A stretch of DNA of 63,971 nucleotides, filler included, from Calcarisporiella thermophila CBS 279.70 (GCF_041956535.1; 6 parts of 6 records of this genome joined end to end with filler, not necessarily neighbours in it), one strand, 5' to 3'; counted from the whole stretch's first letter, positions 61,216 to 63,971 are shown. Translations and numbers: made by a program. Notes: generated by a model from the letters alone, not told the origin.

Positions 61216-62754
61216 TGCTTTATCATCGATTATTCTTCAGTATTTATATTTACTCATGTGCTCTGTAAGCGAGTGTTTTATGGTGATAGCAAGGTTCATA
61301 GGGAAAAATTGTCCGATTCATTTTTAATTCCAGAAAATTGGCAACGTATCTTAGAAAATTTTATTTTCAAAAATTCTTTGCATGAGGGTGGCTTATTACT
61401 CTTCATGATTCCATAGTGTACGTCATCATGAACTTTCCTCTTATTAGATAATAGAGATACATTAAGGAGTCAAAAGGAGGACGAAATTGTTAATTTGTTT
61501 CGAGGATAAATTTCAATGCTAGTGGATAATTGAAGGTTGAATTGCTTTGTTATCAATGAGTCCTGTTGCATGCTGTTGCTTTCCAATCTGTATAAAGTAA
61601 GTGAAAGTTAAGTAAGAATAGTGTAGGCAACAATGAGGCGCAAGTTTAGACTCTATCGACAGCTTCACCGGAGACAATCTCCAGGGTAATGGATCTGTTT
61701 GCATGATGATACTTCGAGAATTATGGTCGAGTAACCGCCGTTTGAGGAACTTTTTNNNNNNNNNNNNNNNNNNNNNNNNNNNNNNNNNNNNNNNNNNNNT
61801 TAATTAATTAANNNNNNNNNNNNNNNNNNNNNNNNNNNNNNNNNNNNNNNNNNNNTGAGAGTAATCTTGCCTCTTTAGAGCAGAGAGATATCAGAAAAAA
61901 AAAAGCCGGGCGCTCTTCAAAGGCCCCCTATATTTCGAAGCAGTCTCATATGCGTGTTGAAAAGGGATCGAAAAATGTGAGGGATTTAGGATTGATTTAA
62001 TGACATATGGACCTACTCTCTATACATTCATTGCAGAAAATTATTTCCTCCGTTTCCAGTGCAGCTCAACATATCATCCCAAAGAAAGTCCAAAAGCGCA
62101 GTGGAAAATAATCGAAGAATGTAAGTAATGTACATTAAAGCCGACTTTAACTGCCAAGACTGGTTGAGTATCATTTTGGTACTCTTGCAGGAGGTTATTT
62201 CTTTGCTCTGCAAAGCAGGCCAACTCGTCGGATGTGAAGTCAACATCGGCGATATCTATGCTAAAGTGATTACCGCCAAAATGACAGAGAACTCTGTCAT
62301 GGTGGAAGTGAAGGAGGAGGTAGAGGAAGGTGTCTGGGATCAGTATGAGATCGAGTATAATACAAATATGAAGCCGCTTCATTGAACAAAGTGCAGAAAT
62401 CGCCCATTGAATATACATTGAATACTATATGCGTTATCAGTAGGCTAAACACGAGAAATATAATTTTCATACCTTTCTTCTCTACATCCCAAAAAATATC
62501 GTTTATCCTTAATTTTGTTTATTATTTTGTACTGATAAAAATAGGATGTCAGAATAGGTAATTATGACGAAGCAAGAGTATATGAATTTTATTTTGATTG
62601 TTCATAATGCTGATATGCCTGCTACTCTCTTCCTTTTAACAAGCTAGGAAAATATAGGCGAGTTTAGACTTTTATCATGTACAAAAGAGAGGAATTGCAG
62701 GCATACTACTTACGCAAATATATGGAGTAGTTTACTTGTACTCAACCTCTTTAA

Positions 62755-62828
62755 TGGAAGGAGTAGGATTCGAATCTATTTAATTGACTTCGAAAGGCAG
62801 CATTAAATCAACTTTATAGCACATCTTC
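62755..62828 (-). pseudogene. Degenerate tRNA-like sequence (apparent anticodon TCG)
   Basis: The minus strand has a TTTCGAA loop and T-arm ATAGATTCGAATCCTAC-TCCTTCCA at tRNA spacing. Acceptor and D stems are mismatched. Confidence 0.35.
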
Positions 62829-63032
62829 AGTAATCGTATCACCGATATAGTAGCTTTATTTTGCAGTTCATTATAAAGCATTATTCCTAGATGTGCATCC
62901 CAAAATATTTTGTAACGCTGAGCTTATAAATGACTCTTTCCGGTATTATATGCTTAACTTACTCTGGCAATAAAGCAAATATCTACTTGCTATTGGTAAG
63001 CCAACGGAGGCTAGTCGAGTTCCTTGTCATGC

Positions 63033-63398
63033 TCATAAGAGAGGAATAAAAGGCAAATCGCCACCACGGACATACATTGTGAAATCCATAAATTCTGCAT
63101 CTTGTACAGAGACTCGAATGCTTCTTATATGGGGATCTCCATTAGGGGATTGACCATTCACCCACGGCAATCCCCGGATAAAATTTAGTAAAATCACCAC
63201 TTCAAGGAGTTGGCAACCGCTTTGATGTCGGAATATACTTTGTTGGATTCGCAAAAATCCGGCTTCAGATATAAGAGCGGCGAGTTCTGTGTAATATTGA
63301 ATATGTGAACCATATGAATCGATTAGGGCTCTTCGACCTAAATCATATTGGATGATCCAGTGGCCAACTCGAAAGAGACCCTCTCTGACAGCCTGCAT
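63033..63398 (-). CDS. VapD/Cas2-like (ferredoxin-fold) endoribonuclease homolog, intronless, 121 aa
   Basis: The motifs IIQYDL / YTELAALISEAGFLRIQQSIF / LPWV / IRSIR / DFTMYVR parallel, in order, the bacterial VapD pattern IAFDL / YxDI..L...GFxxxQGSxY / LxW / VRDIR / SDFT as recalled. Confidence 0.75.
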   Translation of the reverse strand: MQAVREGLFRVGHWIIQYDLGRRALIDSYGSHIQYYTELAALISEAGFLRIQQSIFRHQSGCQLLEVVILLNFIRGLPWVNGQSPNGDPHIRSIRVSVQDAEFMDFTMYVRGGDLPFIPLL

Positions 63399-63567
63399 TA
63401 TATTCTTTTATGAGTTCAAAAGAAAATCAAGAGCAAAATACCTGTGAAAGTATATGCTGCCTCATAAGCATCTTTGGAAGAATGTATGCTGAATATATGC
63501 TAATCAATATTTTTCAAGCCACTCAATTAGGTTAGGTTAAAAGTCGTGAAAAAGGTATAAATGTAAG

Positions 63568-63971
63568 ATGGAGTCGACCCGTGATATCTACCAAAGTTCT
63601 TGCAGTAATCTTTACCAAGTTAGCGCAATGTTAGAAGAAGAAACATCCCTGGACGCCATTTCTCTGAGAGACCGTAAGCGTTATATAATTGTCATCACTT
63701 TTTCCAACTTTCTACTATTCTAATATTTACTTGATATCTTTTTTCTTTATTATCTTTAACAAAGGATGCAAGGATATCATTAAAGATTATCAAGAAGCAG
63801 CCCGGATATATGGCGAATGCTTGACCACAAACATATATGGACAATCGTATCTCGATCCTGATAAATGCAAGGCTAACAATTTCGATCCAATAGAGTAAGA
63901 AAGTTGGAAGTGCGATCCTTTATATGCTAACTTGTTCTATAATAGGGCCACTAAAGAGCAACATATGAGGC
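63568..63971 (+). CDS. Hypothetical spliced gene, 3'-truncated, divergent from the VapD-like gene
   Basis: MESTRDIYQSSCSNLYQVSAMLEEETSLDAISLRD, a GTAAGC...AAAG intron, in-frame RCKDIIKDYQEAARIYGECL..., then a second GTAAGA...GCTAAC...TAG intron. Confidence 0.65.

Follow-up and report, generated by a model that had tools for sequence, protein, structure and literature searches.

A distant relative of bacterial VapD encoded in fungal nuclear DNA

VapD and Cas2 are regarded as prokaryotic proteins, the former as toxins of toxin-antitoxin systems and the latter as CRISPR adaptation subunits, and a strand-swapped dimer is the arrangement of both. The cleft of the VapD dimer carries a conserved Asp and a conserved Ser (PMC11980593). 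The catalytic residues are D7 in H. influenzae, H. pylori and VapD-Mur and D11/S46 in C. jejuni VapD, and a D7N mutation abolishes toxicity (PMC11980593). A census of VapD-like genes makes no mention of eukaryotic ones, the sole occurrence of 'eukaryot' being in the title of a reference (PMC11980593). Our search of the literature found no VapD or Cas2 homologue described in fungi or Glomeromycota, and no mention of two R. irregularis locus tags.

Here we describe a VapD-like gene found in the window, by which is meant the whole stretch of DNA that was analysed (63,971 nucleotides). The gene lies on a piece of 2116 bp (61856-63971, GC 0.30-0.42) that holds a single long ORF, and the features of this piece are listed in Table 1. 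The preliminary description of this DNA had reported an intact, intronless ORF of 121 amino acids; its coordinates and translation are correct and there is no internal stop. By inspection, no signal peptide is present at the N-terminus (R5, E6 and R10 fall within residues 1-10), and residues 11-20 make up the core strand beta1 of the structural model. A role as a classical secreted effector is therefore unlikely.

Table 1. Positions of the VapD-like gene, its key residues and the neighbouring features in the window.
Feature	Position	Strand	Description and basis
VapD-like gene	63033..63398	minus	single exon, ATG start, 121 codons plus stop, uninterrupted; VapD matches by sequence, profile and structure
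Asp19 codon, strand beta1	63342..63344	minus	counterpart of VapD D7 (H. influenzae, H. pylori) and D11 (C. jejuni); alignment to 9kan_A
Ser54 codon, motif QQS	63237..63239	minus	counterpart of C. jejuni VapD S46; alignment to 9kan_A
Loop G82-P89, helix 2 to beta4	63132..63155	minus	insertion of ~4 residues vs bacterial VapD; alignment gaps; model H64-75/E91-99
Residues 103-111 (FMDFTMYVR), C-terminal strand	63066..63092	minus	predicted pairing with beta4 (91-99) of a second subunit
Spacer between divergent start codons	63399..63567		169 bp
geneX, conserved divergent neighbour	63568..63971	plus	exon 1 63568-63673, exon 2 63765-63894, exon 3 from 63946, cut by the end of the piece
Exon homologous to last geneX exon	62197..62385	plus	ends at conserved stop; tail-to-tail with the VapD-like gene

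The product of this ORF is a distant VapD relative, for which the single-sequence match is weak and the match with a family profile is clear. A Pfam scan gave no match even at E 10 (PF09827 was not reached), and a word-index protein search with the single sequence found no relatives. Against NCBIfam VapD (NF041506) the single protein scored 16.1 bits, where the cut-off is 100, and it matched Cas2 of NCBIfam and of PADLOC at E 0.2 and E 0.02, respectively. The missed cut-off says little, since the NCBIfam model is narrow: a bona fide bacterial VapD of another subfamily, encoded on a Sulfuriferula plasmid, also falls below it (29.8 bits, E 5.9e-7). A phmmer search of the PDB with the single protein returned only three entries, all of them H. 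influenzae VapD (6zi0 and 6zn8 among them; E 0.002-0.0045), and the alignment spans residues 15-111. When the family profile was used instead, the top six PDB matches were all VapD (best 9kan_A, E 7.6e-6; the others being 6zi0, 6zn8, 3ui3, 6zi1 and 5dyr). Cas2, which has the same fold and the same beta1 Asp, formed the next tier, as it does by structure, and was far weaker by profile (E 0.39-0.99). Moreover, 10/14 family members matched NCBIfam VapD (best E 3.8e-6). A comparison by hhalign of eight long fungal members with 14 bacterial VapDs gave a probability of 95.8% (E 7.9e-9) over 88 columns, which is approximately the whole bacterial VapD protein. The paired motifs (fungal/bacterial) are IQYDL/IAFDL, GF.RIQQS/GFRRVQGS, LPW/(A)WF, IRSIR/IRAFR and MDFT..VRG/SDFT..VKG. 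The order of the motifs had been said to follow that of VapD, and both alignments agree with this; the profile comparisons likewise put VapD first and Cas2 behind it.

The beta1 Asp and the Ser of a QxS motif, which had been singled out in the preliminary description, are D19 and S54, and these align with the catalytic pair of C. jejuni VapD. Both are invariant across the eight long family members, as are 14 further positions (among them Y18, L20, A24, G30, Y36, G47, F48, G61, C62, W79, G87, T107 and G113), in a set of proteins that are 35-51% identical to that of the window. The fungal protein has the same ferredoxin-like fold and motif order as the bacterial VapDs of H. influenzae (6ZI0/6ZN8), H. 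pylori (HP0315, 3UI3) and C. jejuni (9KAN). It has in common with them the catalytic Asp in beta1, the Ser after beta2 and the C-terminal DFT..V(R/K) strand, and the strand-swapped homodimer of the bacterial proteins is predicted for it. In addition, the fungal gene stands alone with no adjacent antitoxin, like that of H. pylori VapD. There are also differences. Identity to bacterial VapD is only ~13-27%, the gene is eukaryotic and nuclear, and the protein falls below the NCBIfam and Pfam cut-offs. Features that set the fungal family apart are an N-terminal extension of 13 residues, made up of a helix (2-8) and a lengthened beta1, a short insertion before beta4, and two conserved motifs, GC (G61 C62) and, in the tail, GG..P.IP. 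This insertion had been proposed to consist of GQSPNGDP; an insertion is indeed present, but it amounts to only ~4 residues, within G82-P89, when set against bacterial VapD.

An AlphaFold2 model was made from a 13-sequence alignment, the single-sequence prediction being poor (pLDDT 44). The monomer has a mean pLDDT of 79.5, with residues 10-100 at 84-94 (core ~90) and the C-terminal 20 residues at low confidence. Its topology is beta-alpha-beta-beta-alpha-beta, composed of beta1 (11-20), alpha (22-29, 33-45), beta2 (48-52), beta3 (55-58), alpha (64-75) and beta4 (91-99). In a Foldseek search of the PDB the first 8 matches were all VapD (E 1e-5 to 1e-3, TM by target 0.70-0.78) and Cas2 came behind them. 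VIA-align, which is independent of Foldseek, ranked 9kan, the VapD-VapW entry, at the top (Z 9.4, 82 residues at an rmsd of 1.7), with a Cas2 at Z 8.2 and the VapD 6zi0 at Z 7.8 further down, and the first four clusters retrieved from the ESM Atlas with the model are all named VapD. The ferredoxin-like fold that had been anticipated therefore superposes on solved VapD and, after it, on Cas2.

A prediction with two copies of the protein gave an ipSAE of 0.43 (best control 0.01), a score that may reflect what the predictor retains of the VapD and Cas2 dimers already solved and is for that reason counted as likeness and not as proof. The ipSAE mark used for pairs is reached by 21/30 proteins solved as pairs and by 0/23 solved as single chains. 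Three runs share at least 95% of contacts, the partner has a pLDDT of 84, and in the lowest-error contacts residues 103-111 lie along the partner's beta4 (91-99). The protein is thus predicted to form a dimer.

A protein with the VapD fold could alternatively serve as a non-catalytic binding or scaffolding subunit, for which Cas2 in Cas1-Cas2 and the VapW antitoxin are precedents. The best VIA-align match is indeed a chain of the VapD-VapW complex, and VapW, which has the same fold, is a VapD homologue turned non-catalytic antitoxin (PMC11980593). However, VapW is without the catalytic Asp, the Ser and the dimer interface (PMC11980593), whereas the fungal protein keeps both residues and is predicted to have the interface. 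Furthermore, the 2.1-kb piece contains no cas1, no CRISPR-like repeat array, no other ORF with a Cas match and no second VapD-like ORF, and no cas genes lie within 10 kb on either side of the R. irregularis locus. We consider a non-catalytic subunit to be very unlikely. Nothing resembling VapX, VapY or VapW, the partners in VapXD, VapYD and VapWD modules, was found near the gene, and its neighbours in the piece are intron-containing eukaryotic genes. Two further candidates in the window were rejected. A possible relic second VapD copy at 62558-62703, proposed on a 48-nt repeat and one tblastn match, scored only E 5.6 with the family HMM, and a match to snoRNA sR46 was attributed to chance (E 0.63, 16.9 vs 50 bits).

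The family is small. Among 1.84 billion cluster representatives, an exhaustive phmmer search recovered no more than 15 relatives, and a profile search of a 5.8-billion-protein set added five more, bringing the family to some 20 members that share the VapD motifs. This, like the PDB ranking, shows that the match to VapD is not due to chance. All named relatives are from Glomeromycota, namely R. irregularis (P0017, P0019, P0006, P0011), Funneliformis mosseae (P0007) and F. geosporum (P0014). The remainder are unnamed proteins from metagenomes or SRA assemblies, a few of which had been auto-labelled VapD or Cas2 by IMG; apart from these few labels, the database entries of the relatives are 'hypothetical', 'unnamed' or mis-modelled. 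The closest copy (L011; GCA_041956535.1, MU987670.1) is 65% identical. Two pattern scans that covered 185,579 species genomes of bacteria and archaea (GTDB) found no relatives, and neither did one scan each of IMG/VR for viral sequences and of JGI metagenome contigs. The preliminary description had called VapD 'not a characterised eukaryotic family'. This is correct in that no description was found in the literature, but the orthologues or paralogues in Rhizophagus and Funneliformis, and the IMG auto-labels on some of the metagenomic copies, lower the novelty somewhat.

On one metagenomic contig (P0016, JGI 3300067032; genes at 781-1185 and 2163-2612), a second gene of 134 amino acids lies 1 kb upstream of the VapD-like gene, on the same strand. 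It has the same length as family member P0003 and may be a tandem duplicate. A tblastn search against plasmids recovered distant bacterial VapD only, from Sulfuriferula nivalis (NZ_AP021883.1, L013), which was used as the comparator. At that locus (1235-1716), vapD is annotated 'virulence factor' and follows a 66-aa DUF5397 gene with a one-base overlap, and the pair sits between a Tn3 transposase and a recombinase gene. The overlapping layout suggests that DUF5397 could be the antitoxin of this vapD.

Upstream of the fungal gene, and divergent from it, is geneX (Table 1). Its exons join in frame by GT..AG, a CTAAC branch site is present, and exon 2 contains the motif CLTTN.YG..YLDP.KCKA.NFDP. 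Searched singly, the exons matched no Pfam family. We infer that the spacer between the two start codons acts as a shared bidirectional promoter. The head-to-head arrangement of geneX exon 2 and the VapD-like gene recurs at three further loci, which are metagenomic L008, F. mosseae L002 and R. irregularis L009. Across loci, its protein identity is 44-55%, and its DNA identity with R. irregularis is 81% over 58 bp. The gap is ~140 bp from ATG to ATG in L008, ~0.9 kb in L002 and 8.4 kb in L009. The intron after exon 2 occurs at the same position, in phase 2, in the window, R. irregularis and L008. The head-to-head pairing and the shared intron position indicate that the pair predates the split of these lineages. 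In R. irregularis (L009, 1-20363), the 8.4-kb gap holds fragments of a DDE_Tnp_4 transposase, which we take to be of PIF/Harbinger type, and the 10 kb downstream have no called genes, which makes the setting gene-poor and transposon-rich.

These data bear on whether the contig might instead derive from a bacterium, from an endosymbiont such as a Mollicutes-related endobacterium, or from a fungus-associated virus. The gene is intronless and of a typically prokaryotic family, and the contig is only 2.1 kb in length. However, geneX has canonical GT..AG introns at positions common to R. irregularis gene models, as was claimed for the neighbouring gene at the outset. The orthologous pair is found on a chromosome-scale R. 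irregularis contig of 2.23 Mb (CAEVNN010000417.1), where the VapD-like gene, at 1058529-1058891, is an intact ORF of 120 codons that is identical in a second isolate, and the F. geosporum copy adjoins eukaryotic Aldedh and ESCO-type genes. Moreover, the composition of the ORF (GC 0.43, GC3 0.34) is near the range of the neighbouring exons, and the scans of bacterial, archaeal and viral sequences described above were negative. A non-fungal source is therefore extremely improbable. The argument against a bacterial contaminant made in the preliminary description holds, and the contig is fungal nuclear DNA that has been vertically inherited.

The left-hand side of the piece also contains geneX-like sequence. 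When the exon at 62197-62385 was aligned with the last geneX exon from R. irregularis, the Smith-Waterman score was 81 (shuffles 24.6 +/- 4.9, with 0/2000 reaching 81), and a possible homologue of exon 4 occurs at ~62037-62120, where LRFQCS corresponds to LKFPCC in L008. The two ends of the piece (61856-62385 and 63568-63971) thus hold complementary parts of geneX, with exons 1-3 running off the right end. This suggests either two flanking geneX copies or one unit of a tandem or circular (permuted) arrangement. Since both ends lie inside geneX-like sequence, the 2.1-kb contig may be a collapsed repeat unit. Protein and DNA alignments gave no signal above shuffles for a continuation of exon 3 across the ends of the piece. 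An A10 homopolymer occurs near the left end (61895-61904). None of the GT/AG sites tried brought the left-hand exons (ORF 62000-62128 and exon 62197-62385) into one frame, and so this 3' copy of geneX may be degenerate, or its exons may have been modelled wrongly.

The last exon of geneX (window 62197-62382; L009 856-1032; L002 4329-4517) encodes a beta-rich domain of ~60 residues. It has no Pfam match and gave no lead in the protein atlas. An assignment as an Sm/SH3-like barrel was considered and rejected; the six weak SmD3 matches on which it was based (E 0.43-1.7) were gone when a 4-sequence profile was used, and weak S1/OB-type matches appeared in their place. One could imagine that the VapD-like nuclease and geneX form a eukaryotic two-gene conflict or defence module in which geneX regulates, inhibits or targets the nuclease. 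The one piece of evidence for such a module is the head-to-head pairing kept in four loci; in the window, geneX starts no more than 170 bp from the VapD-like start. All loci in which geneX was recognised are of Glomeromycota type. Its last exon shows no similarity to known antitoxins in profile and structure-database comparisons, nor any relation to the DUF5397 gene found upstream of a bacterial vapD (hhalign probability 0.8%). We regard a module of this kind as unlikely. If true, it would be a toxin-antidote-like or anti-RNA system (directed at a mycovirus or endobacterium) rebuilt from a bacterial toxin-antitoxin toxin. Repeated duplication and pseudogenisation would then amount to the birth-and-death dynamics that are typical of conflict genes.

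Between all pairs of the window copy, L008, L009 and L011, synonymous sites are saturated (pS 0.76-0.86) and pN is only 0.21-0.39, which points to purifying selection that has acted on the protein over a long time. Six or more of the sampled copies are broken. The L011 gene (1259-1621) is interrupted at codon 44 by an in-frame stop and has also lost one codon. The F. mosseae copy carries a frameshift near residue 44, that of F. geosporum a frameshift and a stop, and a R. irregularis paralogue (L012) is in three frame-shifted pieces. In L003-L007 the Asp is replaced by Asn and there is an insertion of ~170 bp, and in L014 the frame shifts near the N-terminus, after GNWII. Among the database 'proteins', several are gene models in which invented introns bypass lesions of this kind. 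Downstream of the L011 copy, the geneX-like last exon (1753-1999) is also frameshifted, and the whole 2.1-kb L011 contig looks like a decayed copy of the VapD-like/geneX unit. The number of broken copies indicates that the family is dispensable in some lineages.

It could consequently be argued that the gene in the window is a relic, once acquired, now unused, intact by chance and on its way to becoming a pseudogene. The lesions in other copies, including the closest one, are in keeping with this, as is, in our own reading, the failure of the neighbouring geneX-like 3' exons to join in frame. The saturation of synonymous sites at low pN is not, and neither is the invariance of the catalytic pair and of the 14 other positions. 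In addition, an open frame of 121 codons in AT-rich DNA is unlikely to last long without selection, and intact copies are present in at least three divergent lineages (the window, L008 and R. irregularis). A decaying relic is hence unlikely, and a gene under selection is the reading that we retain.

A small tree places the fungal sequences together (100/100), with only the R. irregularis-type trio resolved among them, and the branch between them and the bacterial VapDs, of which one subfamily was sampled, is very long. The pattern is one of an old acquisition followed by duplication and lineage-specific loss. Horizontal acquisition, as proposed in the preliminary description, is plausible from the taxonomic distribution, on which it wholly depends; the searches turned up neither a donor nor a bacterial sequence closely related to it. 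Because the family is otherwise known only from prokaryotes, the simplest reading is a bacterial origin.

We therefore think it probable that the gene is a nuclear, selected, stand-alone gene of the VapD branch in a Glomeromycota-type fungus, that it encodes a dimeric nuclease and that its origin is anciently bacterial. The product belongs, as a stand-alone protein, to the VapD branch of the Cas2/VapD ferredoxin-fold nucleases. Two subunits are predicted to exchange C-terminal strands, with residues 103-111 lying against the beta4 of the partner. In the dimer, as in that of bacterial VapD, Asp19 and Ser54 from both chains would line a cleft. This putative homodimeric endonuclease, probably metal-dependent, would cut RNA and possibly DNA. 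Targets related to DNA are possible since some VapD toxins trigger the SOS response instead (PMC11980593). The gene most probably entered a fungal ancestor from a bacterium long ago. It would then have been inherited vertically beside the divergent geneX, with duplications and with decay in several lineages, staying intact here and in R. irregularis. Our best guess for its cellular role is intracellular RNA turnover in stress or defence, whereas roles as a toxin, in antiviral defence, in incompatibility or as an effector are speculation.

The fungal protein is a new eukaryotic variant of the VapD family, and it seems that a eukaryote has retained a protein of a typically prokaryotic kind. Recruitment of a bacterial toxin-antitoxin-type nuclease by a eukaryote would be rare, and a VapD lineage that is fixed in the nucleus of one would be such a case; this lineage keeps its catalytic residues and is constrained at the protein level even between deeply diverged members. 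An RNA-cutting function in defence or stress is conceivable in arbuscular mycorrhizal fungi, given that they are coenocytic and harbour endobacteria and mycoviruses. The family is invisible to Pfam and often mis-modelled, with false introns that skip stops, and a profile of its own would improve the annotation of Glomeromycota. Moreover, it offers a small and tractable protein with which to ask what stand-alone VapDs do.
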